Shown here piece by piece: positions 13,081 through 55,273 of a stretch of 64,000 bases of DNA. The stretch spans positions 1 through 64,000 of the forward strand of contig NIVC01002225.1 of assembly GCA_002269645.1 (NCBI GenBank), written 5' to 3'. Each line of letters starts with the position of its first letter. Positions within the stretch are counted from its first letter, which is position 1. The notes beneath the pieces were generated by a model, which was given only the letters and a program-made list of their open reading frames with translations, made no database searches and was not told the origin of the DNA. The position numbers and the translations under genes were made by a program. This DNA comes from Macrostomum lignano (lineage: Eukaryota).

Positions 13081-16000
13081 ATGGAGAGCCGATCTCATTA
13101 CATTGCCACGCAGAGGCGTTTAAAATTTATTGTAAGAGCTTTTAATATTGCTGATCGAGATGATTGCGTCATGGTCTCAGCCGATGAAGACGAACTGTTT
13201 AAGCAACATTGCCACACTGTAGACAGAATAGTGACAGCTCTGTGTCAGGCTGTAGACAGCAAACTGGATTTTGACTGTCCCTGCGGCAGTTTGACGTCCG
13301 CATTGCTCAGCATCTGCAGTCACCACATAGGCTTCCGCTGCTGTCAGAATGCTGTGGCAAAGTACGCGGCCACGAGTGACTTTTTTAGTTCGCTAGCGCA
13401 GCTCGACTGTGCCGCTGGAACGACTAAAAATTCGCCAGATTATAAAGGCCTGGTAACTGGAACTGTCTTTCTTGTGTAATATACTCACTTACTCACTCAC
13501 TCACTCATGAACTCACTCATGAACTCACTCATGAACTCACTTACTCACTCACTCACTCATGAACTCACTCATGAACTCACTCATGAACTCACTCATGAAC
13601 TCACTCATGAACTCACTTACTCACTCACTTACTCACTCACTCACTCATGAACTCACTCATGAACTCACTCATGAACTCACTCATGAACTCACTCATGAAC
13701 TCACTCATGAACTCACTCATGAACTCACTTACTCACTCACTCACTCATGAACTCACTCATGAACTCACTCATGAACTCACTCATGAACTCACTCATGAAC
13801 TCACTCATGAACTCACTCACTCATGAACTCACTCATGAAATCACTCATGAACTCACTCATGAACTCAATCATGAACTCACTCACTCACTCACTGATGAAC
13901 TCACTCATGAACTCACTTATTAACTCACTCATTAACTCACTCGTGAACTCACTTATGAGCTCACTCATTAACTCACTCATGAACTCACTCATGATCTCAC
14001 TCATGAACTCACTCATGAACTCACTCATGAACTCACTTATGAACTCACTCATGAACTCACTTACTCACTCACTCACTCATGAACTCACTCATGAACTCAC
14101 TCATGAACTCACTCATGAACTCACTCATGAACACACTCATGAACTCACTCATGAACTCACTCATGAACTCACTCATGAACACACTCATGAACTCACTCAT
14201 GAACTCACTCATGAACACACTCATGAACTCACTCATGAACTCACTGATGAACTCACTCATGAACTCACTCATGAACTCACTCATGAAATCACTCATGAAC
14301 TCACTCATGAACTCACTCATGAACTCACTCATGAACTCACTCATGAAATCACTCATGAACTCACTCATGAACTCACTCATGAACACATGACCTCACTTAT
14401 AAATTCGCTCATCAACTCGTGAACTCACTCAATCACTAATTCATAAACTTCAGCTTGTCGATCAGTGCCATTTCACAAGTAAGATCCGGTGCTTCATCAG
14501 TCTGGCTCATTCCGCTGTCTGCCTCTCCACTTCAATCGATTATGAATCGCTGCTGAGTCACCCGAGTTGGAAGTTTTTGGCGCACTGCCTCGCTAATATT
14601 GGCGATGACAGGATTGCAGAGCTGTTCTGGCAGCGAGCCTTGAAGCAAGCTGCGATCGACGGTCAACCAAAGCTAGTGGAGCGCTACCACAGCAAGCTGG
14701 CAGTCGGTCAACGCAGAAACGAGTTCTGTCAAGGCCTGATTGCTGATCTGGCCCTGCATGGCAACACTGCGGCGCTGCAGGCTTTGGCTGCAACAATTTC
14801 GGACGATCTTAAGAGAGACCTGTGCTGCAGTAAGTCGGCAGCCAAGGCTGCCCGTGCGGGCCGGTTCGAGGCTGCGGTTCAACTGTTGCTATGCATCGCT
14901 AAATCGTCGGGCACTCACTCGTACATCAGTATTCGGCGAGCATCAAATTTAATGAATCCAGTCAAGAGAAGATCTTTCGAAAAACTGTTGCTCATTGCTG
15001 AACAGAGGGGTCGGACGGAGGAGTTTCTGCGACTGGTGAAACATCTTGATGGGTAGGAGCCGGCTTGAGTAGTATTTCAACCATATGATTTTAACTGATA
15101 AAAACTGACTTGGAAAGCGATGCGCGTTACAGTAGCTACAGACCGGTAAACAAGTATTAATTGGGTTGTTAGGGTACATATTTAAGATGATAGATGACGT
15201 ACTGAAATGATTGAAGGGGTCCATAATGATGATAGAACAGGTGGTGAGACGATAGAACAGGTGGTGAGACGATAGAACAGGTGGTGAGACGATAGAACAG
15301 GTGGTGAGACGATAGAGCAGGTGGTGAGACGACAGAATAGGTGGTGAGACGATAGAACAGGTGGTGAGACGATAGAACAGGTGGTGAGACGATAGAACAG
15401 GTGGTGAGACGATAGAACAGGTGGTGAGACGATAGAGCAGGTGGTGAGACGATAGAACAGGTGGTGAGACGATAGAGCAGGTGGTGAGACGATAGAACAG
15501 GTGGTGAGACGATAGAACAGGTGGTGAGACGATAGAGCAGGTGGTGAGACGATAGAACAGGTGGTGAGACGATAGAACAGAAATGGAGACGATAGAACAG
15601 GTGGTGAGACGATAGAACAGGTGGTGAGACGATAGAACAGAAATGGAGACGATAGAACAGGTGGTGAGACGATAGAACAGGTGGTGAGACGATAGAACAG
15701 AAATGGAGACGATAGAACAGGTGGTGAGACGATAGAACAGACAATAGAAGAGACACTACATATATTACCGCACACCCCTTAGGACTTCTAATGAGCAGAT
15801 CTGTCTGAAATACCTGGCTGAAGTAGTCTTTTTCTCTGGCCGACTCCACCTGCTTCCATCTCTGGTGGCTGACTCGCCCAACCAGGGCGTGAAGATCCGC
15901 GTCCTTGGACTTTTATTAAACGAATCCGATGCGGTCACGGAGCAGCACATCGCGATTGGTCTGAAAATTTTACCTCGAATAGAAAGCCCAGCAAATCGTT

Positions 16001-19000
16001 GGCGGTTCTGCTTGGAGGCTGCCGAGAGAGTCGCCAGGTTAGGCCGCAGCAACCTTCTAGAAGAGCTGATCAAACTGCTGCCGCCTCCGCTTCCCGATGA
16101 TCAGCTTTTGGAGAGAAGAATTACTCCGAAGCAGAAATTGCTAATATTGGTAGCAGAAACCGCGGCAACCGGCGGCGACCTTCGGACTGCCGCTTGGGCG
16201 GCGGGGACTGCAGATTGTGCAGCAATGGAGGATCAGTGCCTCGACAGGGCCAGGCTGGCTGCACAGGCAAGACATCAACTGAGCGTGGCTGTCAGCCTGA
16301 CTCGACTGATTAAGGACGATGGAGCCAGGTAATAATTTTGATTCATTGTGGCTAAACTGGGAGGCTGAGGATTTGGGGATTGGGAAGCTGGGGATCGGGA
16401 ATCTGAGTATTTCCAGCTAAGAATCTGAGAATTACTCGTAAGAATCTGGGGATTAAGAATCTTGGGATTAAGAATCTAGGGATTAAGAATCTTGGGATTA
16501 AGAATCTGAGGATTAAGAATCTGAGGATTAAGAATCTGAGGATTAAGAATCTGAGGATTAAGAATCTGAGGATTAAGAATCTGAGGATTAAGAATCTGAG
16601 GATTAAGAATCTAGGGATTAAGAATCTTGGGATTAAGAATCTGGGGAAATAAGAATCTTGGGATTAAGAATCTGGGGATTAAGAATCTGAGGATTAAGAA
16701 TCTGAGGATTAAGAATCTGAGGATTAAGAATCTTGGGATTAAGAATCTGGGGAAATAAGAATCTTGGGATTAAGAATCTGAGGATTAAGAATCTGAGGAT
16801 TAAGAATCTGAGGATTAAGAATCTGAGGATTAAGAATCTGAGGATTAAGAATCTGAGGATTAAGAATCTGAGGATTAAGAATCTTGGGATTAAGAATCTG
16901 GGGAAATAAGAATCTTGGGATTAAGAATCTGAGGATTAAGAATCTGAGGATTAAGAATCTGAGGATTAAGAATCTGAGGATTAAGAATCTGAGGATTAAG
17001 AATCTGGGGATTAAGAATCTGAGGATTAAGAATCTGAGGATTAAGAATCTGAGGATTAAGAATCTGAGGATTAAGAATCTTGGGATTAAGAATCTGGGGA
17101 AATAAGAATCTTGGGATTAAGAATCTGAGGATTAAGAATCTGAGGATTAAGAATCTGAGGATTAAGAATCTGAGGATTAAGAATCTGAGGATTAAGAATC
17201 TGGGATTAAGAATCTGGGGATTAAGAATCTGAGGATTAAGAATCTGAGGATTAAGAATCTGAGGATTAAGAATCTGAGGATTAAGAATCTGAGGATTAAG
17301 AATCTGAGGATTAAGAATCTGGGGATTAAGAATCTGAGGATTAAGAATCTGAGGATTAAGAATCTGAGGATTAAGAATCTGAGGATTAAGAATCTGAGGA
17401 TTAAGAATCTGGGGATTAAGAATCTGAGGATTAAGAATCTGAGGATTAAGAATCTGAGGATTAAGAATCTGGGGATTAAGAATCTGAGGATTAAGAATCT
17501 GGGGATTAAGAATCTGAGGATTAAGAATCTGAGGATTAAGAATCTGAGGATTAAGAATCTGAGGATTAAGAATCTGGGGATTAAGAATCTGGGGATCGGA
17601 AATCTAGGCATTAAGAATCTGGGGATTAAGAATCTGAGGATTAAGAATCTGAGGATTAAGAATCTGAGGATTAAGAATCTGAGGATTAAGAATCTGGGGA
17701 TTAAGAATCTGGGGATCGGAAATCTAGGCATTAAGAATCTGGGGATTAAGAATCTGGGGATTAAGAATCTGAGGATTAAGAATCTGAGGATTAAGAATCT
17801 GAGGATTAAGAATCTGAGGATTAAGAATCTGAGGATTAAGAATCTGAGGATTAAGAATCTGAGGATTAAGAATCTGAGGATTAAGAATCTGAGGATTAAG
17901 AATCTGGGGATTAAGAATCTGAGGATTAAGAATCTGGGGATTACGAATCTGAGGATTAAGAATCTGGGGATCCGGGGATCAAGAATCTTGAATTGGGAAT
18001 CTGGGGATCGAAAATCCATATGAGAAATCCAGGACCGGGAGCTGCGATCATGGGCTGAAAAATCAGGCGACTGTAATGGGATCTGAGTTGAGCAGTTCGC
18101 CAATTCAGATAAGTGTACCCCTCGCTCAAATTTTACAGCGAGTCCGCAAGAGTAAACGCCTACAAAAACTGTCTAAAAAAATCTCAATCATCGCTAATCA
18201 TAAATGGAACAACAAACCATGGCATCTATCTGGCCGACAATTCGACGAAGAATTTGTACCTGCTGAAATTTTTAGCTGAAACTGTCGCCATAGGAGAGGA
18301 CTACTATGTAAAAGTAAGCAGCTACAGTATTAGATTTCGATCTATTCGGAAAGGAAAACAAAAACTTACAGGTTAAAAAGTATAGGTTTGAATGGGATGG
18401 GGTATACTAGCTTGCAATAAGTAACGGTCTATTTTTCTGTCTGTTCTCTGCCAAAGCAAGTAGTGATGCGCTCTTGCTTATTCTTATTGAGTAATAATCT
18501 TACTTATTAAATCGGTTCAGTTAAGTGTTCAACCATTCACCGTGATTGTGGGATTGGGCGGGTGCAATCTTATCGATTAACTTTGCGGTCGATTTTTACA
18601 GCCACCACCACTCTCTTTTTCAAGCTTCTGCTTGAACACGAGCGTTTTCATTAGCCAATAGCAGCTCTAGTCATGTGTTGGGGTGGGTGCAATCTTATCG
18701 ATTGACTATAGCCGACTGACTATCCAACCACCCAACCCTTTCCTGTGGGGTGGGTGCAATCTTATCGATTGACTATAGCCGACTGACTATTCAACCACCC
18801 AACCCTTTCCTGTGGGGTGGGTGCAATCTTATCGATTGACTATAGCCAACTGACTATTCAACCACCCAACCCTTTCCTGTGGGGTGGGTGCAATCTTATC
18901 GATTGACTATAGCCAACTGACTATTCAACCACCCAACCCTTTCCTGTGGGGTGGGTGCAATCTTATCTCTGGTTGAGTCAGCTTTACAGCCAGCCACACC

Positions 19001-22000
19001 CAGTCTATGATTAGCCTATTTACATGTAATTACCATTGGAAATAGCATTGGAATACCTTACGAAATTTAGGATGGGTTGCAATTTTATCGAGAAATTGAT
19101 TAATTAAGTAGTCTAAGTCACTTTTACAGCCACAAGCCTTTCTTTTTCTATTAGCAGCCTCAGCCCAACTTTGATTTTACACTTTAATAATGTAAACTGG
19201 TCGACTTCCCAGGAACTGGTCGATCTTAACCAGAACCTTAAACAGATTTCTTCGAAAAAAACTCTTGGAAAAACATTTGCGTGCAAGAAATACTTAGAAG
19301 ATCTTTTATAAATTGCGAATTGTTAATTTGCAAATATTAAAATAACATTCGATAACTTCATGCACTAACTACACTCAAGAACGAATGGCTATTGGTTATT
19401 TATTTATTCATGCTAAAATATTCAGAAAATCCTGCTCAACGCAAATCAGCACCAGCTTCATCAGCTGCTGTGCTCCAGCCTCTCTCACGGTCACTCCGCC
19501 CTGGCTACCGCCATATTGCCAAGTATTCAAGATGTCAACAAAAGGCTGGATGACCAACTCTGCAGCACTACTCTGATGCTTGCCGCCGAGCTGGGTCACT
19601 GCCACGTCATTGCCAAACTATTGGAGCGAGGAGCTGACAGAGCGGTGCGAGACACTCAGGGCTGCACAGCGCTGGACAGAGCTCGGCTGTGCGGGCGGAA
19701 CCAAGCAACTTGGGTGCTGGCAGAGGAGGGGAACGTTGAATTGACATCCCCTGCTTCAACTGGGTGAGTATAGTGTGTCAGTGTGTCAGTTTGAGCAGTT
19801 GGTCTTTTGACTCACTGACGCAAATTAAGTCATCAAATCATCAAATCAAATAAAATTAAATTCAAGAGTTGACTCAAAAGTTGTCAGTCAAGCTGTGCTT
19901 TTACCATTCTTGCCTTGCAGCATTCACTTTTAAAAATTCATTTCAGAACCTTTGAACAGGCAGTGCCTGAAAAGAGTCAAATGTGAGTACAATTACATCC
20001 TTTCCGCAATTAAGATTTGAATTGAACGCGAAGCTTCATAAATTAATCATTCGGCTTACCAAGATTTTCTATACATGGGGTAAGAGATGCTCACTACTAA
20101 AAAGCACAGTGCATGTATAGGCAATATATGCGCAGCTTAAAAAGCGATAATAAAGTTCGTCTCAACCTACCTGCAGTGACATTGACCTACACGATTCTCA
20201 GCTCAGCGAGAAGCTGCACTGGGCCCTCACGAGCTCCGGCTTCACCCAGAGCAGAGCGGCTTGTCAGCAGAGGCTGGCAGACTTACTGGAGCGGACAGCC
20301 GCTTGTCTGAGCCTCTCCAAACCCCGTCTGATCGGCAGCTTTGCTGACGGCTGGGGCTGCAGTCTGACAAGGCTGAATGCGAGGCTTTCTGATGGGTCCG
20401 GGATCGACTGGCTGACACCCGTTACGGCTGCTGCTGGCTGCCCAGGTGCGACCAAGCTGCGACTAGACTTCACCGGAGACCCTCCCGATAAAGAGGAGGG
20501 CGCCCAGCTGCTCACTGTAGAAGATGACGCATCGGGATGTGAGTCACAGCTGACCGCAATCAGCCGTAAATCATATCACCTATACGACTTAGTCGGTACC
20601 CAAAACTGTCAAACCATTTGTTGTCTTGCAGTTGGCCAGCAGCCTCCAGTGGCCTCAGCTCCGTGTGGTCTCAGGCCAGCTACCAGCACTACCTTGGCAT
20701 TTCGCAGTCCTCAATCAGCGAGCATTCTGCTCTTGCCTGTGGTTTCCATTCGTAATGCAGCCCTAATCCACCTGCAGCAGACATTCGCTCTCGAAGAGAA
20801 GCAGCGGATGCGACAGCTGAACACAGTCCAGGGCCAGCTGTTCATTCTGCTCAAGTTCCTACTCAAAAACTACCTGGCCGAGGTGTCGCAGTGTCCGGGA
20901 CTAACGAGTCATCACGTCAAGCACCTGCTGTTCTACCTGATTGAGACTCACGGCTCGTGGAACTGGCAAATGTGGCAGCCGCACAAGCTGATAGAGCTCG
21001 CCAAAGAGGCCCTGGACTTGATGATGAAGTTCCTGGACTCGACCAGCTCAAGTGATGATGGTTGCATGCCCAGCTTCTTCAAGCCACATGTTCAGCTGCA
21101 GCTACAATGGACTGGAAGACCTGCGGATGAGGCCAAGACTCGAATTCGAGCTGAGCTGCTCAAAGCTCGGAGTGACCTCGACCCCGCAGTCAAGAAGCTG
21201 ATGAGCCACCTGAAGCCTCTGGATGATGATGACAAGCTGTATTTCGACTTGTTCACTCTGCTACCTTTGACTCTGCCTCCCGATGTGCCTCATGACCGGA
21301 AATCGCAAGCTCCAGACGCTACTGAGCTCGCTGGACTTTACTGCTCAGTGGCGGCGGCTTTGCGAGCTCTGCAAGCTGCAGACGAAGTGGATGGCGAAGG
21401 AGCTCTAATGCGGCAGCTTGAAAGTTGGTACGAGTGCAGCTGGTGTCACTGCGCGGTCAGGTGTTTAGCTGTGATGGCGCAGCTGAAGTACAGGAACAAA
21501 ACTGCGGCGAAGGAGACGCTGAGCGAATTGGTAAGAGACCAGGTGAGAAAACGGCCTCATTTTTGGTGGCGAATTTCAGCTTCGATTGATGAACTAAACA
21601 GGGAAGATTCTAGTGACTCGATTTCTGAACATCTAAAACCCTCCCTTTATCAGGTGATGAGCAGCGGTTGGACGGTCGAAGACCTCAGCAAAGAGGCCAT
21701 ATCGGAGACTCAAAGCTGGCGATGGCCGTTGAGCACCGATTGGGCCTGGAGGTTCTGCCTGCCCTGCGACCGGCGGCCCAGCCTGCCGTTTCTACCCAGG
21801 TTCACCGAGTCGCTGCTCACTGCTCGACTCTGCAGCCGCTCACCGGTGCAGCGCCACCTGTACGTGAACTTCCGCTGTCTGAGCTGGAGTCTGCAAGCTG
21901 AGCTGCTGGGCGGTCGGCGCGCGGCATGCTTTCGAGCCGACGACGGAGCTGCGGGCTCGGGATTCGCCAAGAGGCTGGCGCAGCAGTGGTTCCGGGAGCT

Positions 22001-22211
22001 GCAGGCTGAGTCTGCGGGATCGCAGCTGGACACGGAGGAGCTGGCGACGCTGGCCCACTACACTGACAGCCCGGTGCACCTCCGCTTCTGCCTGGAGCGA
22101 ATGGAGGCGGTTGTTGCTAGGGGGCCACGGGTTGCCATGGACAGCTGCGACAACGAGAGGCTGGAGCGAGTCAGCAGGAAGTTGGGCCGCTTTGGTTGTT
22201 TTATTGGTTAA
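13081..22211 (+). CDS. Alpha-solenoid + ankyrin + Mab-21/cGAS-like (cGLR-type) protein, copy 1; exons 13081-13452, 14454-15052, 15783-16328, 18139-18313, 19426-19763, 20177-20538, 20632-21542, 21654-22211 (~1286 aa)
   Basis: All junctions are GT-AG and phase-consistent (0,2,2,0,2,1,0); total 3861 nt is divisible by 3. Ankyrin repeats TTLMLAAELGHCHVIAKLLERGAD and GCTALDRA. Mab-21 features LIGSFADGW..SGID, QGQLFILLKFLLK, LTSHHVKHLLFYL and MPSFF. Every exon has a paralogous exon in copy 2. Confidence 0.75.
13483..14430. repeat. 12-bp minisatellite (ACTCACTCATGA)n in cGLR-like copy 1 intron 1
   Basis: Visible tandem units; degenerate traces of the same motif at 23200-23380 in copy 2 intron 1. 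Confidence 0.95.
15233..15740. repeat. 20-bp minisatellite (GTGGTGAGACGATAGAACAG)n in copy 1 intron 2
   Basis: Visible tandem units. Confidence 0.95.
16420..17975. repeat. 15-bp minisatellite (GATTAAGAATCTGAG)n in copy 1 intron 3
   Basis: Visible tandem units. Confidence 0.95.
18681..18968. repeat. 67-bp tandem repeat (~4.3 copies) in copy 1 intron 4
   Basis: GGGTGGGTGCAATC recurs at 18681, 18748, 18815, 18882 and 18949. Confidence 0.9.
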
Positions 22212-22785
22212 ACTCGACCAAAGCGATTTAGAAAGGATGCTGTCTTTCGGTGGTGTTTTGGTGGTGCTTTTAGCAGAAAGACGTTTGTTCGGCTGCAACA
22301 TTGGACACAAAAAGAATTATATTATAATCTATGAAATTATTTCGATATCTAAAATATAGTGTCAAAAATATAATATTGCAGTTACGCATGGTTTATGCTA
22401 GATAGAGGTTTGACTTCGCGCTTCGGAAGAACCAAAGAATCCCTTCTGGAAAAAGCATATAGCTACTTTTAGTAGGCATAGATATGTTACTGCTCAAGCA
22501 TTATAGAATTGACATTGTTCCTACCTGAAGCAGATGTGCATTCCCGTTCACTGGCAGTAAGTACTCAGACACTGCAATGAACATGCAAAGTACATTCAAG
22601 CCGGAGAGAATGGACTCAGAGAGATGAGTTGGGCAGAAGTTGGCAAGGTGAGAAGAATGAGCCGAAAATAGCACACGCCAGAGGGCTATAACCGAATCAA
22701 ACCGAAAGTCAGACCTGCCAGTTCTGTGCAAGAAACATTTTCCCCAAGAAATTGCCAGACAAAGTGAATATTTCTTTTGGTTGCC

Positions 22786-25564
22786 ATGCAAGCAAATCGA
22801 TGCCTAGTAAGGCGCTTGAAGCTGCTCAGAAGAGCTTTGCGAATAGTCGATCAAGCTGACTGCAACAACGGAGACCAGCTGGATGACGAGACGATGCTCA
22901 AACGGCACTGCGACATCCTTGACAGCTTGGTGGACGCAACCAAAGATATTTTAAACTACCAGGCTACGATTTCTGAGCACCATTGTCAGTGCGTTTTGAT
23001 GGCACTGCTGAATATTACCCGTCACAGCGTCGGCAACAGGTGCTGTCAAAATGCTGTAGTGAAGTACGCGGCCACATGCGACAGAGAAGAAGCGCAACAG
23101 AGAGAGTCTAACAGTGCAACTGCTAATGGCCTGGACTGCTCAACTGCTCTGCCGCCCATGGTAACTAGCAGAGTGCACAGTCCATTGCTCTAGCCTATTC
23201 ACCCAATCATGAACTCATTCAGGAACTCACTATCTTTGAGGAATTGAACTCACTCGTGAATCCACTCTTAAACTCACTTGTCACCAAATCACTCATTGAA
23301 CTCAAATATGCCCTTACTAATGAATTCACTGATAAATTCACCATTCAACTCACTTATGAGCTCCACTATGAACTCAAATCTAGCAAGAACAAGTAAATCT
23401 ACAATCCGTAAAGTAAAGTAACGTAAAGTACGTAAAGTAACGTTCATTTTTCTGAACTTACGTTAATCAACCTTCAAGCTATATATTAGGTCATTGCTCC
23501 TCATATTACGTTTTCAATGGGAGGCAAGAACCAAAGCTTTTATGGAATCCAAAAAATCGACCCTTCCAGCCCGATGCGATTCGACGGGAGCTGCCGAACA
23601 GACGAGAAGAGTGCTACATCAGGCTGGCAGACGCCGCTGGCTCATTCGCCGTCTCAGTTCAAGACTCCTCCGCCGCGGAATCCAGTTGGAAAGTCCAAGG
23701 CCACTGCCTTAAGAAGCTGGCCAAATCGAGTTACCAACTGCAAGCTGCTTGCCGTTGCAGGGCCATTGAACAAGCTGCTCGGGATGGTCGGGTTGAGGTT
23801 CTCGATCGGTACATGCGAAAGGTGCCTGCGATGGATCGAAGCTTTTTGTGCACATGCTTGATTGAGGAGCTGGCACTGAGCGGCAAAGTGGACGCTCTGA
23901 GAACCCTGGCCATGGCAATGCGTGAAACGGACAGCAGAAACTGGTGCTGCTTTCGGATGGCAGCCAATGCCGCTCTTGCTGGACGTCTCGAAGCTTCCGT
24001 TCTGCTGCTTCAGAGCATCACCTTTGGCGACAAGTTGAGGAAAAAGTGCTGCAAGAGGCTGGTGCTCATTGCAGAGGAACAGCATCAGTTGGAAGAGCTT
24101 TTTTGGCTGCTTAAAAACACAAGCGCGTAAGCAATGTTAAAGTTCTGGATAACGCTTGTGGCTGTACCGGGACTATTTAGAAAGGCACTACCGACATTGG
24201 AGCAGTTTAAAAAAAAACTGTAGACATTGGAAATATTTTAAAACACTACGGATACTGGGTTCATTTTAGAAAGGCACTGCAGACCCTTTAGAAAGACACT
24301 TCAGACATCAGGACCCTTTAGAGAGACACTGCAGACACTGGGACCCTTTAGGAAGACACTACAGACATTAAGACCTTTTAGAAAGGCACTACAGACATTA
24401 GGACCCTTTACGAGGACACTGTAGACGTTGGGACCCTTTTTGAAGACACTGCAGACATTGGGACCCTATCGAAAGACACTACAGACATTAAGATCTTTTA
24501 GAAAGGCACTACAGACATTAGGACCCTTTATGAAGACACCGCAGTCATTGGGACCCTTTATGAAGACACTGCAGACAGTGATTATTTGGAAAGCCACAAT
24601 AAATCATTGTGATGTAACCGCCCTTGTCGCCTGTCCGCTCCGTAGAGAGACGAACGCATGACTAGAGGGGTATAAGACCGTAGGCTGCCTATGACCGGGC
24701 AATGACCTGACGGACCTCCAGCACCAGACTGTCCCGCCCACATGATTAATAGCTTTGGTAGCGCTTTGTGACCAGAGGGCCAAGGACCCACATGGACCCC
24801 ACCTGTAGCCAAGGTGCAATAGTTGGTCACTCGGTCATGGTATGACCGAGTGGCTGCCACCACTCTATGTGACCTGGCGCACCTAGATCTTACTACCAGA
24901 CCTCTCGAGGCTAGAGTCCCGCCTGGGATGGTTACCAGGAGATTTAGGCTAACAGGGGAGACGCATGCAGCCGAGTACAGGGACTCTGCTTGGGGAATGA
25001 TCGGGAACTCTGGGCTCAATCTGGAGGATTTCTCAGCAGGGGATCCTTTGTGGCTGTGAGCGAGGCTGACTTGCGACTTTGATTACTAAGAGTAGTATGA
25101 GACAAACATGTGCTGTCTCTAGTTTAGATTGCTCAGGGCGAAGGGACGCGTCAGCATGGGGTTGCAACCTTCCTACTGCCATTCTGTGCCAAGACTCGCT
25201 AATCCCTCTACTGCACGCACACACGGCCCCGAAGCACGCACTCACAGGCGGGCTTTGCACGGGGAGAGGCCAATTAGTTTACCCAACTTCCTTATGCTTT
25301 GCCATCCCGGGAGAAAGGCTTAGCAAGCCATGAGTGAAATGATGGTGAAAGAGTGGATAATGATGAGGTTAGTTAATAGTTAATAATTAGGCCCTTAGGC
25401 AAATAATCAGTCAATTAGGCGGCTTCACTATTGAGTAAAATACAGCAAAAAGTTACGGTATCACAATTGACTCAGCTCTCTAATTAAGCAATGGAAAATA
25501 GGCAAACCCCGGATAAGCAAGGGCGATTAGAGCACAAATTAGTAATAGAAACTTACCGGCAGCT

Positions 25565-25607
<43 letters not shown>

Positions 25608-28600
25608 GAGTGACCGAGGACGGCTTTAGGCTGCAGTCAGGCAGACAGTGAAGCGGCGATGCGCTGTAACTTGGCGGTATCAGACCGCGGACCGGCAGAG
25701 GTTCGTCCTATAGACGAATAGGTCAGATCAAGGTCTGACAGCAAGCCCCCAGTAGGGCGAGAAGGAACGCTTCGCCGAAGACTTTTGAGGATTCTCATGC
25801 CGAAAACCGCTTCCTTTTATAGCCTTCCCAGCCGCCGCTCCAAGGTCGTTTCCATGACTCCCTCTCTCTGATTGGCTGCCGGCAGAATGACGTCAGAATG
25901 AGTCATGATGAGAAGCATGAGACCGGCATAGCAACATGAGAAATGGGAGAATTGCGCAATCCGGAGGCGGGGTGGGGGGATAATTGGCGCAGCGGGAGGT
26001 CGCAAAAGTGTTGCGCAAGCAAACATTGAGAACAATGGGGCTGGGGTCGAGAACAAAGGAATTGGAAATCGTGGATAATTGGGGAGGATCGAGAACAATA
26101 GAAAAGCAAACATTGGAGAAAAGATGATAATTAGGTGCGAAAACGAGAACAAAAGAAAGAGAAAATCGGAGAAAATGTGATAATTGGTGGGGGTCGAGAG
26201 AACAAAAGAATCAAAAACGAGAACAATGGAAGCGGAGGTGGGGTGGGTGTCGCATGAGAAATTTGGGGAGGAGAACAATGGCGTGAGAAAAGGTTGCGCA
26301 AGAGAGGGGGATGAGTCATCAATGAGTCATCGAGGGGAAGAAGGGTCACACGACTTGCGTCACCGTTTAAGAGTTTGAGAAGGGATGGGGTGACGGTGAG
26401 CGCACAAAATACTGTAAGTAGACGCAGAGAAAGGGGGTACAGCGCAGGATGATAGTGCGAAAAGGGGCAAAAGAGGGGAGACAGGAAAAGTACATGAAGA
26501 ATAGGGCGGAGCGCAGAGGAGATAGGGTAGAGGGGGAGGTACAAAGAGGGAGGGGGAGCTCCGGAAAGGCAAGTGTGGCGGCAGGGGAGACGGAGCCAAG
26601 GCAGCAGGGGGGTGCAGCAGAGCGGGAGTCTCCAGGCCTGGTCGAAGACCTGGCCGAGTCTCAACAGCTCTGTGCAGGGGGTGCACGGCGATAGTAGGCA
26701 CTTTCGAAAAAGTTCCCCTGCCCTATCCCGCGACCAGAGCGTGGTTACATCAATTGGACCACTTTGGGAAGACACCGAGGCCAAAGAATAGACTGTACTC
26801 TGCAGATCAACTTCGCGGGCAACCCCTGGTGCTTGCAGGGTGCTCGAGCGGATCAACTGCCTGTGGATGCTGGCGGAGGCAGCCGCCAAGAACGGCTTCC
26901 TGGCGCTTCTCCCGGACGTCGCGGCGGCGGTAGCCAGCCTGACATTCAAGAGCGGCATTGTGGTCCTACTCATTCAGAAATCTGCCGCACCAACTGAGCA
27001 GCGCCTGAGAACCGCGATGAAGATTCTGCCGCAGATTAAGGATGCCGCTGAGCGGAGCCATCTCTTTCAGATTTTGGTCAGGTGCGCTGCTCGTTTTGGA
27101 AGTTGCGTCCTCATAGAAGAAACGCTGGGCCTGCTGCCAAGCGAGTCCGAGGACGGGGACTCGACAGCTGAGCCGTCGCACCGAGACGAGCTGCTGTCTG
27201 CGGCTGCAGAGGCTGCGGCCGGTGGGGGCAAACTGGAGACAGCGATCTGGGCCGCTGAGGCCATCGACAGCGAATCAGAGGCGCATCTGTGCCTGGCTGC
27301 GGCAGCTGAGGCAGCTCAGATGAGCAACCGGCTTGATGAGGCTGTCAGCCTGGCTCGGCTGATCAAGGATGCCAGCGTCAGGTGGGGTCGGGGTGTCAGA
27401 TGTAGTAAATTCTGGACGTGGAAATTGAGAACTGGGGAAGTGGGAATTGAGGATGTGGGGATAGGGGATGTGGGGGTTGGAGCTGTGGGAGTTAAGGATG
27501 TGGGAGTTCGGGGATGTGGGAGTTTGGGATGTGGGAGTTAAGGATGTGGGAGTTCGGGGATGTGGGAGTTTGGGATGTGGGAGTTCGGGGATGTAGGAGT
27601 TGAGGATGTGGGATTTGGGGATGTGGGAGTTGAGGGTGTGGGAGTTGGGGATGTGGGAATTTGGGATGTGGGAGTTGGGGATGTGGGAGTTGAGATGTGG
27701 GAGTTGGGGATGTGGGAGTTGGGTTGTGGGAGTTAAGGATGTGGGAGTTCGGGGATGTGGGAGTTTGGGATGTGGGAGTTGGGGATGTGGGAGTTGAGAT
27801 GTGGGAGTTGGGGATGTGGGAGTTGGGTTGTGGGAGTTGGGGATGTGGGAATTGGGGATGTGGGAATTGGGGAAATCCTCTACATGCTATTGAGACTTTA
27901 GAATCAAGGGATTAAGGAAAAATCAGATGCTTGGATTTTTAATTAATAATTTGCGAATTGCGAGGCTGAGCAACTTACTCTCACTACTCAAACTCAATCA
28001 ATCAGAAAGTCAGCTCAGGTCAGGGCCTACAGACGCTGTCTGCCAGAGCAGCAGGTAGCCGAGCTCAGTGAGACCGTTGTTAATCATGGCTGCTTCCTGG
28101 CGGACAATTGTATCACGAATTCAAGCCTGCTGGCTCTTGTGGCTGCTACAGTTGCCATGGGCGACCAGTTCTACCTGCAGGTCTGCAACTGCTGTGATGT
28201 CTATTAAAAGCTATCCACAATTTCATATGCATACATTTCGAAATATTAATTAGGAAATCCTGCTCAACGCAAATCAGCACCAGCTTCATCAGCTGCTGTG
28301 CTCCAGCCTCTCTCACGGTCACTCCGCCCTGGCTACCGCCATATTGCCAAGTATTCAAGATGTCAACAAAAGGCTGGATGACCAACTCTGCAGCACTCCT
28401 TTGATGCTTGCCGCCGAGCTGGGTCACTGCCACGTCATTGCCAAACTATTGGAGCGAGGAGCTGACAGAGCGGTGCGAGACACTCAGGGCTGCACAGCGC
28501 TGGACAGAGCTCGGCTGTGCGGGCGGAACCAAGCAACTTGGGTGCTGGCAGAGGAGGGGAACGTTGAATTGACATCCCCTGCTTCAACTGGGTGAGTATA

Positions 28601-31600
28601 GTGTGTCAGTGTGTCAGTTTGAGCAGTTGGTCTTTTGACTCACTGACGCAAATTAAGTCATCAAATCATCAAATCAAATAAAATTAAATTCAAGAGTTGA
28701 CTCAAAAGTTGTCAGTCAAGCTGTGCTTTTACCATTCTTGCCTTGCAGCATTCACTTTTAAAAATTCATTTCAGAACCTTTGAACAGGCAGTGCCTGAAA
28801 AGAGTCAAATGTGAGTACAATTACATCCTTTCCGCAATTAAGATTTGAATTGAACGCGAAGCTTCATAAATTAATCATTCGGCTTACCAAGATTTTCTAT
28901 ACATGGGGTAAGAGATGCTCACTACTAAAAAGCACAGTGCATGTATAGGCAATATATGCGCAGCTTAAAAAGCGATAATAAAGTTCGTCTCAACCTACCT
29001 GCAGTGACATTGACCTACACGATTCTCAGCTCAGCGAGAAGCTGCACTGGGCCCTCACGAGCTCCGGCTTCACCCAGAGCAGAGCGGCTTGTCAGCAGAG
29101 GCTGGCAGACTTACTGGAGCGGACAGCCGCTTGTCTGAGCCTCTCCAAACCCCGTCTGATCGGCAGCTTTGCTGACGGCTGGGGCTGCAGTCTGACAAGG
29201 CTGAATGCGAGGCTTTCTGATGGGTCCGGGATCGACTGGCTGACACCCGTTACGGCTGCTGCTGGCTGCCCAGGTGCGACCAAGCTGCGACTAGACTTCA
29301 CCGGAGACCCTCCCGATAAAGAGGAGGGCGCCCAGCTGCTCACTGTAGAAGATGACGCATCGGGATGTGAGTCACAGCTGACCGCAATCAGCCGTAAATC
29401 ATATCACCTATACGACTTAGTCGGTACCCAAAACTGTCAAACCATTTGTTGTCTTGCAGTTGGCCAGCAGCCTCCAGTGGCCTCAGCTCCGTGTGGTCTC
29501 AGGCCAGCTACCAGCACTACCTTGGCATTTCGCAGTCCTCAATCAGCGAGCATTCTGCTCTTGCCTGTGGTTTCCATTCGTAATGCAGCCCTAATCCACC
29601 TGCAGCAGACATTCGCTCTCGAAGAGAAGCAGCGGATGCGACAGCTGAACACAGTCCAGGGCCAGCTGTTCATTCTGCTCAAGTTCCTACTCAAAAACTA
29701 CCTGGCCGAGGTGTCGCAGTGTCCGGGACTAACGAGTCATCACGTCAAGCACCTGCTGTTCTACCTGATTGAGACTCACGGCTCGTGGAACTGGCAAATG
29801 TGGCAGCCGCACAAGCTGATAGAGCTCGCCAAAGAGGCCCTGGACTTGATGATGAAGTTCCTGGACTCGACCAGCTCAAGTGATGATGGTTGCATGCCCA
29901 GCTTCTTCAAGCCACATGTTCAGCTGCAGCTACAATGGACTGGAAGACCTGCGGATGAGGCCAAGACTCGAATTCGAGCTGAGCTGCTCAAAGCTCGGAG
30001 TGACCTCGACCCCGCAGTCAAGAAGCTGATGAGCCACCTGAAGCCTCTGGATGATGATGACAAGCTGTATTTCGACTTGTTCACTCTGCTACCTTTGACT
30101 CTGCCTCCCGATGTGCCTCATGACCGGAAATCGCAAGCTCCAGACGCTACTGAGCTCGCTGGACTTTACTGCTCAGTGGCGGCGGCTTTGCGAGCTCTGC
30201 AAGCTGCAGACGAAGTGGATGGCGAAGGAGCTCTAATGCGGCAGCTTGAAAGTTGGTACGAGTGCAGCTGGTGTCACTGCACGGTCAGGTGTTTGGCTGT
30301 GATGGCGCAGCTGAAGTACAGGAACAAAACTGCGGCGAAGGAGACGCTGAGCGAATTGGTGAGACATCAGGTGAGAAATGTGACCCGCTTTGGTGATAGG
30401 TATCACACAATTTTAGTGTTGCCGAGACTGGGGGTCAAGTAAAGTTCTCCATGACTCATTGTAGCTTCACTTATAAAGCAATCAAGCACCAATGCGATCA
30501 GCCTCCATTGCTTCGGTAGGTATGAGAGGCTTTCAGTAGAAATTTCCCAACAAGCTCAACATCCCAAGATACATATAATCACCACCGAGCTCGATCGATT
30601 GTTGCGATTGTTGGAAGGCTTCTCAGGACTCGTTCCTACTCCAGTCGCAGTGTTGACAATGATCTGATTACGGGAAAGCTTAAATGACCTCTGCTACACC
30701 GGACTTTGCTTGACCTTAAATGACCTTTGCCTTATCTGATGGTTGAACTTACGTCATTTTCGTCAAGGGAGTGGAAAACTTACCAGCTTCTAGAGGTTAA
30801 AAAATAAACTGTACTGTTGAGATTAAAATGACCTTGGAGCAGGTGCACTACAGGATGTAAACGTAAAAGCGTGTTGATAAAAAAGGTGAAAGCATGTGCT
30901 CGAGCAGAGATGTACGTCCACTGACATTTATTTTTGAAAACACTTCGTACGTTTCGGAAGCTTTTTGATAGCAGATTGTGATGAAGAAGGCCGTAACAAT
31001 CAGCTCCGTGCTACATGTAGATGTAGATATTGTTAACTGCCACGCCAAGACCAAAGATCAGAGCGGAGCGGTGGGTCTTAGGGGTGATTGTGCCTTCCGA
31101 ATAACCGAGACCAGATTCTTGGCTAGGATACTGAAGACGCAAGTCAACTTCAGAGCTAAGAGATTCAATTGGCTTGTTAAGAAGAGGGCTTTGCGATAAA
31201 CCAGGATGCCATTGCACAGGCGTTTCAGACCTCACAAGGCCACTTAGCGTACTTATTCAGTAGGACTGCAATTCAAGTTGTGACTATGGGTTCCAGACGT
31301 CAGTAAAAGGCACCGAGAATTGTTTTGGTTAAGCCAATGCAAAGACAGCAGCTAAGGGCTGTAAAGACTCAAGCATGCATGAAATCAACAAGCATTGCTC
31401 ACTTGTTAAATGCTATCATAACAATTCCAGGAGATGAGCAGCGGTTGGACGGTCGAAGACCTCAGCAAAGAGGCCATATCGGAGACTCAAAGCTGGCGAT
31501 GGCCGTTGAGCACCGATTGGGCCTGGAGGTTCTGCCTGCCCTGCGACCGGCGGCCCAGCCTGCCGTTTCTACCCAGGTTCACCGAGTCGCTGCTCACTGC

Positions 31601-31997
31601 TCGACTCTGCAGCCGCTCACCGATGCAGCGCCACCTGTACGTGAACTTCCGCTGTCTGAGCTGGAGTCTGCAAGCTGAGCTGCTGGGCGGTCGGCGCGCG
31701 GCATGCATTCGAGCCGACGACGGAGCTGCGGGCTCGAGATTCGCCAAGAGGCTGGCGCAGCAGTGGTTCCGGGAGCTGCAGGCTGAGTCTGCGGGATCGC
31801 AGCTGGACACGGAGGAGCTGGCGACGCTGGCCCACTACACTGACAGCCCGGTGCACCTCCGCTTCTGCCTGGAGCGAATGGAGGCGGTTGTTGCTAGGGA
31901 GCCACGGGTTGCCATGGACAGCTGCGACAACGAGAGGCTGGAGCGAGTCAGGAGGAAGCTGGACAGCTTTGATCGCTGCTTCCTAGCTTTTAGTTGA
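22786..31997 (+). CDS. Alpha-solenoid + ankyrin + Mab-21/cGAS-like protein, copy 2; exons 22786-23160, 23570-24126, 26839-27381, 28006-28180, 28254-28591, 29005-29366, 29460-30370, 31431-31997 (~1275 aa)
   Basis: Same eight-exon structure and intron phases as copy 1; exon 4 is 175 nt in both. Total 3828 nt. Exons 5-7 are near-identical to copy 1 at offset 8828 bp. Confidence 0.75.
24170..24580. repeat. Degenerate ~30-bp tandem repeat in copy 2 intron 2
   Basis: Recurrent ggaccctttagaaagacactgcagacatt variants. Confidence 0.8.
24610..26752 (-). mobile_element. Putative solo LTR (~2.1 kb) in intron 2 of cGLR-like copy 2
   Basis: Termini TGATGTAACC...GGTTACATCA form a perfect 10-bp inverted repeat (TG...CA). 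4-bp TSD ATTG at 24606-24609 and 26753-26756. TATAAAA on the minus strand near 25820. Confidence 0.65.
27440..27872. repeat. 15-bp G-rich minisatellite (GATGTGGGAGTTGGG)n in copy 2 intron 3
   Basis: Visible tandem units. Confidence 0.9.
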
Positions 31998-32936: not shown

Positions 32937-35900
32937 TCACAGAGCCGTGTAATACTTCTTCTTTTTCTTCTTCTTTTGCTGCTCAGAATCTGCTCTGGGT
33001 CTGTCAGCTTCCATTGGCTTCATCTCCACAGACACCTGCAAGGAATTTAGGGATATTTATAAGAGATTTAAGGAGGAATTTTTATTATTCCAAAATGGGA
33101 TTTGATTATTCTAATAGGGGATTTGATAATTCTAATAGAGGATTTGATTATTCTAATAGAGGATTTGATTATTCTAATAGAGGATTTGATTATTCTAATA
33201 GAGGATTTGATTATTCTAATAGAGGATTTGATTATTCTAATAGAGGATTTGATTATTCTAATAGAGGATTTGATTATTCTAATAGAGGATTTGATTATTC
33301 TAATAGAGGATTTGATTATTCTAATATGGGATTTGATTATTCTAATAAGGGATTTGATTATTCTAATAGAGGATTTGATTATTCTAATAGAGGATTTGAT
33401 TATTCTAATAGAGGATTTGATTATTCTAATATGGGATTTGATTATTCTAATAGGGGATTTGATTATTCTAATAGGGGATTTGATTATTCTAATAGGGGAT
33501 TTGATTATTCTAATAGGGGATTTGATTATTCTAATAAGGGATTTGATTATTCTAATAAGGGATTTGATTATTCTAATATGGGATTTGATTATTCTAATAG
33601 GGGATTTGATTATTCTAATAGGGGATTTGATTATTCTAATAGGGGATTTGATTATTCTAATAGGGGATTTGATTATTCTAATATGGGATTTGATTACTCT
33701 AATAGCGGATTTGATTATTCTAATATGGGATTTGATTACTCTAATAGCGGATTTGATTATTCTAATATGGGACTCGAAAGTTTGATTAGGTGATCTGAAG
33801 GTTTCAATTCGAGTTTCTAATGGTAAATTTAAATATTTTGGTATTTAAAGTCCAATCGAATAGTTGGGATTTCAGAATCGAATAGGGGATTCCAGGCTCT
33901 TACCTGATTAGGTTTGACAGCCTCATCGGCGCTTCCGCCGCCTCCTTGAGCAACAAAGTTGAGCAGCTCCCTCTGGCCTGTCCGCTGGAAGTGCACGCTG
34001 ATCGGTGGCCATTCGCCGCGTTCGAGTTTTAGTTGCCGGGCCACTCGCTCGAACTCCTTGGGCTTGCTGATCAACCGGCGACCAGCCCGGTGGACGAGTC
34101 GGCTGAACCAGACGGACTCAACTAGTTGCTCAACCAGAAACGCGATCAGAAAGTTCATCAGGATGGCGCCGACAAGGACAAATTTTATTGACAGATTTGG
34201 GTTGTCTCGGGGCGCGTCCCAGGTCTGCGGGTTGCGGACAGCGGGACGGGGACTTGACCTTGAATGACCTTTGCTTCACCTGACTATGGTTGACCTTAAA
34301 TGACCCCTGCTACACCTGACAATGGTTGATCTAGTATGACCATTGCTTCACCTGACTATTGTTGACCTTGTATGACCTCCGCTATACCTATGGTTGACCT
34401 TGACCTTTGCTACACCTGACTATGGTTGACCTTAAATGACCTCTGCTACACCTGACGATGGTTGACCTTAAATGACCCCTGCTACACCTGACAATGGTTG
34501 ATCTAGTATGACCATTGCTTCACCTGACTATTGCTGACCTTGTATGACCTCCGCTATACCTATGGTTGACCTTGACCTCTGCTACACCTGACTATGGTTG
34601 ACCTTGAATGACCTCTGCTACACGTGCCTAGTAGTCCCTTGACTCCATACGACTTCGAACGCAACAACAAAAGTACACGATGTGATAAATTTAATGTAGC
34701 AAATTAATTCACCTCTAGCAAGTTTCCCAGCCAATCAGTGGGAGCGAAGATCACATAGAGATTAACACCAACTACTATAGCGATGTTGATCATGAAAGCG
34801 TCTGGAATAGCAAATATTGCACAAGAAGGATTATGATTTGAGTCTTATCTAGAAGTAATAATCGCTTTATAACTACCTTGCCTAGATAAAACTTCCTATA
34901 AGAATTATGTTATTATGGCTAAAGCTTCCCGTCAGGAATCATTGACTTCATAAGCTTCCCAAATGAAATTGATGACTTCATTTGCTTCCTCAGATGAAGA
35001 TAATCATTCCAAAAGCTTCCCATACGGAAACAATGATCCCAAAAGCTTTCCATACAGAAAAAATGATTCCAAAAGCTTCCCATACGGAAACAATGATTCT
35101 AAAAGCTTCCCATACGGAAACAATGATTCTAAAAGCTTCCCATACGGAAACAACGATTCTAAAGCTTCCCATACGGAAACAACGATCCCAAAAGCTTCCC
35201 ATACGGAAACAATGATTCCAAAAGCTTCCCATACGGAAACAACGATTCTAAAGCTTCCCATACGGAAACAACGATCCCAAAAGCTTCCCATACGGAAACA
35301 ATGATTCCAAAAGCTTCCCATACGGAAACAACGATTCTAAAGCTTCCCATACGGAAACAACGATCCCAAAAGCTTCCCATACGGAAACAATGATTCCAAA
35401 AGCTTCCCATACGGAAACAACGATTCCAAAAGCTTTCCATACGGAAACAACGATCCCAAAAGCTTCCCATACGGAAACAATGATTCCAAAAGCTTCCCAT
35501 ACGGAAACAACGATCCTAAAAGCTTCCCATACGGAAACAACGATCCCAAAAGCTTCCCATACGGAAACAACGATCCCAAAAGCTTCCCATACGGAAACAA
35601 CGATTCCAAAAGCTTCCCATACGGAAACAACGACCCCAAAAGCTTCCCATACGGAAAAATTATTCTAAAAGCTTCCCATACGGAAACAACGATCCCAAAA
35701 GCTTCACATACGGAAACAACGATTCTAAAAGCTTCACATACTGAAACAACGATCCCAAAAGCTTCACATACGGAAACAACGATCCCAAAAGCTTCACATA
35801 CGGAAACAACGATTCTAAAAGCTTCCCAAACGGAAATAATAACCGACTGACTCACAGTTGGTCAGCATGCTCCGTCTGTAAGGAGCGGACTTGGAGAACA

Positions 35901-44531: not shown

Positions 44532-44592
<61 letters not shown>

Positions 44593-44607
44593 ATGTCTGT
44601 CTGTCTT

Positions 44608-44644
<37 letters not shown>

Positions 44645-44671
44645 ATGTCTGTGTGTCTGTCTGTCTGTCTT

Positions 44672-44706
<35 letters not shown>

Positions 44707-55033: not shown

Positions 55034-55247
55034 TGTTTTCAAATTATCGTGGTTAAGCATAAACTAATCTACTTTTACGTACTTAAACAATTTTATAGAC
55101 TAAAACTTTCAACTTTCACTATAAAAGTGATTTACATGAAAACATATTGTAGCAAAAATTATTATGTACTTTATCGATTCAATATCTATTCAAAAATATA
55201 TCTCTGACTGGGCACTGAACTTCAAGCCAGGCTCGTGATTTAGTCCA
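55034..55247. mobile_element. 214-bp TG...CA element (solo LTR-like), copy A, with 5-bp TSD GTTGC
   Basis: Begins TGTTTTCAAA and ends TAGTCCA. GTTGC at 55029-55033 and 55248-55252. About 97% identical to 60726-60940. Confidence 0.6.
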
Positions 55248-55273
55248 GTTGCGACGAATAAAGCGGAAGACTT

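Follow-up and report, generated by a model that had tools for sequence, protein, structure and literature searches.

Gene organization at the locus

The stretch of DNA analysed here, hereafter the window, is the first 64 kb of contig NIVC01002225.1 of Macrostomum lignano (assembly GCA_002269645.1, Mlig_3_7), and its subject is a pair of intact tandem paralogs, termed gene A and gene B, which are strongly diverged in their 5' halves and nearly identical in their 3' halves. Both genes lie on the + strand and bear GT-AG introns, the splice sites and phases of which were derived from open reading frames (ORFs) and from the alignment of A with B; the contig coordinates of gene A are the same as its window coordinates. 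The encoded proteins are composed of N-terminal helical 'CC' repeats, ankyrin repeats and a cGAS/Mab21-fold domain, and a tblastn search finds A and B to be the only paralogs of this type within the window. The coding features are as follows.

13081..22211, + strand: gene A (BOX15_Mlig001378g1), an intact ORF matching NCBI protein P0001, with nine coding exons
13081-13452, 14454-15052, 15783-16328 and 18139-18313, + strand: exons 1-4 of gene A
19426-19763, 19947-19982 and 20177-20538, + strand: exons 5, 6 and 7a of gene A
20632-21542, + strand: exon 7b of gene A, with an alternative donor after 21530
21654-22211, + strand: last exon (exon 8) of gene A, including the stop codon
22212..22785: intergenic spacer between A and B, 574 bp, 99.5% conserved at the second locus described below and read through by some public models
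22786..31997, + strand: gene B, the tandem paralog, with an intact ORF and introns placed and phased as in A
22786-23160, 23570-24126, 26839-27381 and 28006-28180, + strand: exons 1-4 of gene B
28254-28591, 28775-28810, 29005-29366 and 29460-30370, + strand: exons 5, 6, 7a and 7b of gene B
31431-31997, + strand: last exon of gene B, including the stop codon

Intron positions are equivalent in the two genes and the intron phases are identical (0, 2, 2, 0, 2, 2, 0). Gene B has no gene call among the NCBI-derived calls for NIVC01002225.1, and parts of it are matched with 100% identity by two UniRef models of a separate annotation, P0020 and P0003. Inspection of the spacer by eye did not find a clear poly(A) or trans-splice signal.

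An original prediction for this DNA had treated exon 7 as a single exon, which requires amendment, as it contains a genuine in-frame intron of 93 nt (intron 7a, 20539-20631, GTGAGT...TTGCAG) that is spliced out in the NCBI model; the shared zone described below accordingly holds three introns. The position of intron 7a is conserved in two distant paralogs with mapped structures, P0004 at L004 and P0011 at L005, both of which also share introns equivalent to introns 5 and 6 of A and B and are without introns at the positions of introns 4 and 7. A recent gain of introns 4 and 7, considered on account of this absence, was dropped because A and B are the outgroup, and gain and loss are equally parsimonious. 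Both intron 7a and the 111-nt intron 7 of gene A (21543-21653) are multiples of three in length and free of stop codons, such that 20154-22208 forms a single ORF of 685 codons and retention of either intron would keep the reading frame.

Near-identical 3' blocks and their limits

Self-BLAST of the window, followed by ungapped comparison, identifies two, and only two, long direct repeats in this area that are not in tandem. These blocks, together with the introns that delimit them, are positioned as follows.

19424..21550, + strand: homogenised block 1, A copy, from exon 5 to the end of exon 7b, including introns 5, 6 and 7a
28252..30378, + strand: homogenised block 1, B copy, at an offset of 8828
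21651..22194, + strand: homogenised block 2, A copy, covering the greater part of the last exon
31428..31971, + strand: homogenised block 2, B copy, at an offset of 9777
18314..19425, + strand: intron 4 of A, 1112 nt, bounding the shared zone on its 5' side
28181-28253, + strand: intron 4 of B, 73 nt, without homology to intron 4 of A
21543..21653, + strand: intron 7 of A, 111 nt, unrelated to intron 7 of B
30371..31430, + strand: intron 7 of B, 1060 nt, which splits the shared zone and is 98.1% conserved in gene B' and in the fusion gene of the two further loci described below

Over the 2127 bp of block 1, A and B differ by 8 mismatches and no gaps (99.62% identity), while block 2 bears 9 mismatches in 544 bp (98.35%), a higher density than that of block 1 (Fisher P=0.003). 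The mismatches of block 1 are restricted to its ends (19426, 19570 and 19573; 21453, 21467, 21533, 21537 and 21539) and leave a core of 1879 bp (19574-21452) in which A and B do not differ at all. All 17 mismatches would miss a particular 1879-bp stretch in 2671 aligned bases with a probability of 1e-9, and chance is thus excluded as the source of this mismatch-free core. Exons 5-8 of A and B encode protein that is 95-100% identical, compared to only 32-44% for exons 1-4 (32-42% by tblastn), and this is the mosaic that the original prediction had described, with N-halves identical at about 40% joined to 3' halves identical at about 99%. Its finer claims hold as well: the roughly four substitutions noted in 19427-21530 are exactly four (19570, 19573, 21453 and 21467), intron 7 measures 111 against 1060 bp, and the last exon, put at about 98% identity, stands at the value given for block 2.

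The identity extends to sequence that does not encode protein. Introns 5, 6 and 7a show no difference between A and B in 470 nt, and in the shared exons the proportions of synonymous and nonsynonymous differences (pS 0.0077 and pN 0.0055, respectively) reveal synonymous sites to be as alike as nonsynonymous ones. Since introns and silent sites are equally homogenised, purifying selection alone cannot explain the identity.

The limits of the two blocks are largely, but not wholly, set by introns. The 5' edge of identity is the AG of the intron 4 acceptor, and the sequences upstream of 19424 in A and of 28252 in B are unrelated. Downstream, identity ends 8-20 nt inside intron 7 and starts again at the CAG acceptor of the same intron. 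In Smith-Waterman comparisons, the similarity between A and B in introns 4 and 7 and in the 3' flanks is not above that of shuffled controls (for intron 4, a score of 22 against 18.9 +/- 2.8 in shuffles). Derivation of the 73-nt intron 4 of B from that of A by deletion was rejected, as the two are dissimilar in sequence. The 3' limit lies inside the last exon, where from about 22175, some 35 nt before the stop codon of A, every site is paralog-specific; the last 12 or so codons differ, and the proteins end in ...SRKLGRFGCFIG and ...RRKLDSFDRCFLAFS, respectively. The earlier statement that breakpoints fall at exon edges is therefore correct for the junction of intron 4 with exon 5 and for intron 7, and incorrect for the 3' end. 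The remaining differences between A and B are concentrated at the extreme ends of the two islands of identity. In the first island they lie at the opening base of exon 5 and in the final 12 nt of exon 7, in the second at base 2 of exon 8 and in the closing ~35 nt of coding sequence, and several of these are old paralog-specific sites.

Traces of common descent in the diverged halves

Outside the blocks, the two genes retain limited but consistent signs of a common origin. The alignment of exon 4 yields 24 identical residues of 58, exactly as had been counted by hand. Intron 1 of A (13651-13831) and of B (23201-23376) contain the same 12-nt minisatellite, (ACTCACTCATGA)n, with a Smith-Waterman score of 127 where shuffles reach 20, and a G-rich 15-nt minisatellite is present in both copies of intron 3 (16369-16402 in A, 27833-27867 in B). 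The minisatellites of introns 1 and 3 are positionally equivalent, though the remaining intron sequence cannot be aligned. The proposal that the introns of the diverged halves are unrelated thus survives for intron 4, where similarity is no better than in shuffles, and fails for introns 1 and 3 with their common minisatellites. The conserved intron positions and phases, these minisatellites and an exon 8 end that is alignable at old divergence together indicate the common descent of A and B as whole genes.

Two fragments are the only homologs of the N-half of B obtained in a homolog search, and this N-half is barely represented beyond the locus. Between homeologous copies, the pN/pS ratio of the N-halves is ~0.56 for A (14 differences) and ~0.39 for B (18 differences), giving no sign of diversifying selection on the time scale of homeolog divergence, at low counts and with low power.

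Two further loci

The 90% cluster of gene A includes two additional NCBI proteins located on other contigs, which define the loci L002 (NIVC01002371.1) and L003 (NIVC01000702.1). The window and both of these loci display a common synteny of P450, innexin, innexin, the gene in question and then a P5-type ATPase gene on the other strand. The Mlig_3_7 assembly is known to hold three homeologous subgenomes, named S, L1 and L2, with 1.4-2.4% divergence in single-nucleotide polymorphisms and many indels (PMC10733133). Divergence among the three loci outside the shared block amounts to 1-2%, matching the subgenome level, and the three presumably represent the S, L1 and L2 subgenomes.

L002 contains a complete second tandem pair, A' and B', in which both genes are intact and the same mosaic is seen with the same boundaries. 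Compared in separate exon and intron pieces, since minisatellites swamp a megablast of the whole locus, L002 and the window show identities of 98-100% for the N-exons, 98-98.7% for introns 4 and 7, and 99.5% for the spacer. In the four-way alignment of block 1, A and B stand together against A' and B' at 34 informative sites between 19443 and 21322, a count that takes in intronic sites and a 4-bp indel, and sites that group A with A' against B with B' are found in the block only at 21467, 21533 and 21539. Elsewhere, the latter type occurs throughout the flanking introns, and in intron 4 all of the variable sites are of this type. The pairwise differences in block 1 follow suit, with 9 between A and B and 20 between A' and B', against 41 for A-A', 49 for B-B', 48 for A-B' and 50 for B-A'. 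With the third locus as a reference, ~23 sites and a 4-bp deletion are private to A and B together, and ~8 sites are private to A' and B' together. The last exon is mixed: sites 21668 and 22079 are of the conversion type, 22123 is an old paralog-specific site, and every site between 22175 and the stop codon is paralog-specific as well.

A GENECONV-type test, which the original prediction had named as a check, points the same way. By Sawyer-type permutation, the longest concordant run between A and B covers 58 of 73 variable sites (P<1e-5) and that between A' and B' covers 27 sites (P=5e-4), both longer than expected. As paralogs group by locus within the block and by gene in its flanks, exchange between the paralogs must have followed the separation of the loci, and conversion after that separation is shown for at least two lineages. 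Either a new mutation was copied to the neighbouring gene or an older difference between A and B was resolved in opposite directions at the two loci. Gene conversion that homogenises the 3' module, one of the two processes originally put forward, is accordingly upheld by these sites across exons and introns as well as by the crossover fusion at the third locus.

That locus, L003 (reversed, 16049-20622), carries a single gene with one exon 5 and one exon 8, corresponding to UniRef A0A1I8H6N7 (P0002) and NCBI PAA78175.1 (P0022), with the P5-ATPase gene ~1 kb beyond its stop codon. Site comparison over 4.8 kb of sequence reveals an A-type N-half with an A-type intron 4, while intron 7, the tail of exon 8 and the 3' flank are of B type. 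The gene is the deletion product of an unequal crossover within the shared block, the point of which is placed no more finely than 19426-21453, the donors being so alike. Within intron 7a of the fusion gene lies an 832-bp insertion (L003:~17246-18077) with terminal inverted repeats of 214 bp, the arms of which are 99.5% identical, flanked by a duplicated TGTCAAACCATTT; no further copy of it was found in the window, L002, L004 or L005.

Some public gene models join parts of neighbouring genes. NCBI PAA58481.1 (P0021) links exon 7 of A' to exon 8 of B' over 16.8 kb (L002:10001-26786), and UniRef A0A1I8IUE2 (P0003) links the last exon of A to the first of B (window 22170-22800). Such joins may stem from transcripts that read through or are polycistronic, or from fusion-gene transcripts assigned to the wrong homeolog.

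The ankyrin and cGAS/Mab21-fold module

The shared 3' halves encode the two recognizable domains of these proteins, located as follows.

19483..19734, + strand: ankyrin repeats in exon 5, A copy (Pfam Ank_2), with the B copy at +8828
20177..21280, + strand: cGAS/Mab21-fold nucleotidyltransferase-like domain, A copy (AF2, Foldseek and profile evidence), with the B copy at +8828

The ORF of exon 5 scores 31 bits against Pfam Ank_2, above the gathering threshold of 27.3, while Ank_2 scanned in full-length P0001 yields 25.5 bits and the paralogs 42-206 bits. Detection of the second domain is less direct. With Pfam Mab-21_C, for which the cutoff is 24.1, A and B reach 20-23 bits and paralogs 24.1-28.3, and a profile compared to sequences of the Protein Data Bank finds cGAS at 3.6e-5 over profile positions 199-284 only; profile searches that include the ankyrin columns are dominated by generic ankyrin proteins. 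The Pfam Mab-21 core domain gives no match, and sequence methods detect the helix bundle only. An AF2 model of the ~340 residues after the ankyrins, built from an alignment of 30 sequences, has a predicted local distance difference test (pLDDT) score of 82.8 and a predicted template modelling (pTM) score of 0.86; an earlier model from 12 sequences had a pLDDT of 58, of ~25 in the core, and marginal Foldseek matches. With the 30-sequence model, Foldseek returns cGAS at an E-value of 1.7e-6 (template modelling (TM) score 0.54, 389 columns), along with MAB21L1, MiD51 and the bacterial CD-NTase CdnE at TM scores of about 0.5, and the model superposes on all four along its full length. The ankyrin and Mab21 assignments of the original prediction thus both stand, Ank_2 being above threshold and the model aligning across the entire domain with cGAS, MAB21L1 and MiD51.

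Most of the 30 aligned family members bear (M/V)(T/V)GS...D(I/V)D...RPAxD, which fits the active-site motif of cGAS-like receptors (cGLRs). A, B, A', B' and the fusion instead carry LIGS...GIDW...RPATS, together with deletions in the core; in the A copy, LIGS...GSGIDW lies at about 20334-20411 and RPATS occupies the position of the family's RPAxD. By comparison with the 30 family members, A and B have lost two of three catalytic acidic residues. The active-site criterion used for cGLRs is h[QT]GS x8-20 [DE]h[DE]h x50-90 h[DE]h (PMC9980059), a pattern from which A and B depart. Their predicted structure is homologous to those of cGAS and the CD-NTases, which the same work also asks for. The A and B proteins are probably non-catalytic on the strength of these replacements. 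Catalytic acids are also lost in at least two more family members, P0036 (DCDMNW) and P0156 (DSNVNW), and the remaining members keep the full triad, such that the cGLR-like expansion of M. lignano appears to mix putatively active and inactive members.

The family to which A and B belong is Macrostomum-specific. About 25-30 representatives at 50% identity align over the span of ankyrin repeats and nucleotidyltransferase (NTase) domain, and all of the 10 sampled members are M. lignano proteins, mostly present as g1/g2/g3 copies. Members from this species have already been listed and cloned as predicted cGLRs (PMC9980059 supplement). In the distant paralog P0004 (L004, NIVC01001823.1:119588-130914), more than 10 near-identical 37-aa 'RDRCCIEAAKSAA..WEVVKFLVSQVADQAN' repeats and the ankyrin repeats share one 1.7-kb exon, and the gene lies inside, and antisense to, a very large CFAP46-like gene.

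The suggestion that an effector module is homogenised while sensor modules diversify is not borne out by these data, given the loss of two of three catalytic acids and an N-half pN/pS of ~0.4-0.56, and the analogy with the sensors and effectors of immune receptors remains speculation.

Origin of the near-identical halves

It is very probable that recurrent non-allelic homologous recombination between old tandem paralogs keeps the 3' ~2.7 kb of A and B nearly identical. The process would consist mostly of gene conversion between copies 8.8 kb apart, with an unequal crossover now and then, and would homogenise the span that opens with exon 5 and stops shortly before the last exon ends. Conversion tracts would initiate and resolve only in DNA that is still alike, which would give rise to two homologous islands. 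The first would extend from exon 5 to exon 7b, its tracts carrying along the short introns 5, 6 and 7a, and the second would be the last exon, inside which the tracts would fade out; tracts would halt at introns 4 and 7, where A and B have no sequence in common. Nothing upstream of exon 5 is included because exon 4 and intron 4 offer no homology, and the unrelated intron 7 (111 vs 1060 nt) separates the islands, each with a history of its own, which fits the differing divergence of blocks 1 and 2. The sharpness of the exon edges would likewise be a consequence of where homology ends.

Three features of the locus weigh against this explanation. Conversion needs flanking homology, yet identity reaches the first base of exon 5 without a graded zone; intron 7 has never been co-converted despite its position between two homogenised exons; and it is unexplained how the 3' halves stayed competent for recombination while the N-halves fell to ~40% identity. 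For the 3' halves to remain this similar, conversion must have continued ever since the duplication, or a single replacement must have occurred at the outset. The latter could have established the boundary at exon 5, but cannot be the cause of the present identity.

As a complete explanation, a one-off capture of an exon block, in which a copy of exons 5-8 of A (or of B) replaced the 3' half of B (or of A) through an event that was non-homologous or bounded by splice sites, and identity merely records the youth of that event, is quite unlikely. It would suit the very sharp 5' junction at the AG of intron 4, the sharp edges at intron 7, the mere 73 nt of intron 4 in B, and the fact that P0004 and P0011 lack counterparts of introns 4 and 7. 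The occurrence of the mosaic at L002 with the same boundaries, however, dates any capture to before the split of the loci, and the counts of 9 and 20 differences within pairs (A-B and A'-B') against 41 and 49 between homeologs (A-A' and B-B') would still require later exchanges at both loci. Blocks 1 and 2 also differ in age. Moreover, old paralog-specific sequence that can still be aligned survives in two places, at the end of exon 8 and in the final 12 nt of exon 7, from which it follows that B has an ancestral 3' end of its own. The shuffling of exon blocks that had been offered as an alternative to conversion is not needed: it cannot explain the site patterns that arose after the split, and the old-type exon 8 tail reveals that B possessed a homologous 3' end of its own.

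Very unlikely, too, is a more elaborate scenario in which the limit at exon 5 is the scar of a transfer delimited by splice sites, through exon-block capture or through repair from a partly processed or trans-spliced pre-mRNA, and the catalytically dead cGLR-like module is kept identical by selection, as a common platform for oligomerisation or signalling that serves two N-terminal recognition modules.

Misassembly is an unlikely cause of the identity between A and B, judging from the sequences compared, and it is highly improbable that two 3' halves which really differ, or one that is present only once, were made to look identical by repeat collapse, scaffold chimerism or polishing with reads that map to several places. 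The concern is a legitimate one for Mlig_3_7, which is highly redundant, with 93% of read pairs mapping to several places and a reported 36% of the assembly length in scaffolds that are chimeric between subgenomes (PMC10733133); all three loci derive from this one assembly, which also counts against the conversion reading, and cross-polishing could yield a mismatch-free core of 1879 bp. Polishing would nevertheless blur all five near-identical copies, and instead 34 sites are fixed differently in each pair, their locus-specific states standing in phase with locus-specific flanks in two contigs. The same structure is found independently at L002 with private differences of its own, L003 is a clean fusion, and the three loci were assembled separately. 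In addition, the UniRef model P0020 reproduces both the junction of exon 4 with exon 5 in gene B and the two B-private substitutions (K>E and T>P), and a 2.1-kb repeat at a spacing of 8.8 kb should be easy for long reads to resolve.

Conversion templated by RNA, whereby the repair template is a pre-mRNA that has been partly processed or trans-spliced internally, or a cDNA of it, and tracts end at splice junctions, is extremely improbable. Edges located 2-3 nt from acceptors and 8-20 nt from a donor are in keeping with it, as is the trans-splicing of a large share of M. lignano transcripts. Introns 5, 6 and 7a, however, lie inside the tract and are identical, and the template would have been unspliced there; a spliced bridge from exon 7 to exon 8 would have deleted intron 7, which both genes keep; and the 3' limit falls inside an exon. 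No positive evidence for an RNA template was found. Finally, a spliced retrocopy is rejected by the retained introns, purifying selection alone by the identical introns and silent sites, and a cluster of variable and constant exons of the protocadherin or UGT1A type by the complete 3' module and stop codon that each N-module possesses, at L002 as in the window.

Other features of the window

The window is exceptionally dense in long minisatellite arrays with periods of 12 to about 64 nt, which are mostly intronic and are the source of its strong local swings in GC skew. Examples include 11553-12394, 14011-14471, 15108-15840, 16299-18016 and 33073-33798, and further arrays are found at 34919-35840, 37305-38532, 39039-41564 and 42316-43651. 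The minus-strand exons of the P5-type ATPase gene extend from about 33832 to 47609, and antisense within this span is a Fibrinogen_C ORF (43859-44329, + strand; Pfam, E 7e-30). An LTR (long terminal repeat) retrotransposon occupies 55034-60942 on the minus strand, bounded by 217-bp LTRs (55034-55249 and 60726-60942) that are 97.7% identical; a single long ORF encodes reverse transcriptase (RVT_1), RNase H and integrase zinc-binding domains (58160-60730), and a second ORF after it an integrase-like product (56990-58156).

Comparison with known systems

Regional gene conversion is well known in tandem duplicates, including the human gamma-globin genes, the red and green opsins, RHD/RHCE and CYP21A2/CYP21A1P. 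Genes A and B resemble these cases in their tandem arrangement and common orientation, in a sub-region that is near-identical down to its introns and silent sites while the rest is diverged, in tracts that are mosaic and of different ages, and in a similarity within the locus that exceeds that between orthologs or homeologs. They differ in the extremity of the contrast within one gene, with ~40% protein identity beside 99.6% DNA identity, in limits that coincide with two non-homologous introns, and in the availability of three homeologous loci in a neopolyploid, which serve as natural replicates with independent conversion and fusion. Fusion genes of the Lepore type, such as the delta-beta globin gene, arise by unequal crossover, and the hybrid at L003 is built alike: the upstream paralog contributes the 5' part, the downstream paralog the 3' part, and the interval is deleted; unlike Lepore, however, it is one of three homeologous loci in one genome and not a variant in a population.

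Clusters of plant NLR genes and other immune genes are comparable in that the family of A and B is lineage-specific and expanded, exchanges sequence between paralogs, and has tandem members that combine a repeat-rich variable part with a conserved module of nucleotide-binding type. In contrast to such clusters, the variable half bears no mark of positive selection, evidence of an immune role was not found, and the conserved module seems to have lost catalysis. Among the top structural matches of the A and B domain are MiD51/MiD49 and MAB21L1, in which a Mab21 fold without cGAS-type catalysis demonstrates that the fold can act as an adaptor or ligand-binding module; the relationship to them is one of fold only and not of sequence, and nothing here points to a particular partner or ligand. 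The animal cGLRs, which include ankyrin-fused ones and M. lignano members that entered the screen of Li et al. (PMC9980059), are alike in architecture, with an NTase core and helix bundle, a predicted cGAS-like structure and an ankyrin fusion, and the family core GS-x-GW-x-L...D-h-D...RPAxD is that of the M. lignano proteins in the supplement to the same work. Unlike those cGLRs, A, B, A', B' and the fusion miss two of the three catalytic acids. Should the scenario of a splice-site-delimited transfer with a selected common platform prove true, the pair would be a flatworm analogue of paired receptors.

No new mechanism or new kind of system is revealed by these genes. What they offer is a fresh example of a known process, replicated unusually well, in a protein family that is already recognised. 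For the annotation of this genome, they expose public models that are mis-joined at these loci and a gene B that is uncalled in the NCBI-derived set. For the study of regional concerted evolution, they provide a clean and internally replicated example, in which two of three loci have been homogenised independently and one has collapsed to a fusion. The resulting contrast in rates is one of 0 differences across 1.9 kb inside a pair and ~2% when homeologous copies are compared. They also display non-allelic recombination at work, actively reshaping a lineage-specific cGLR-like family during rediploidisation.

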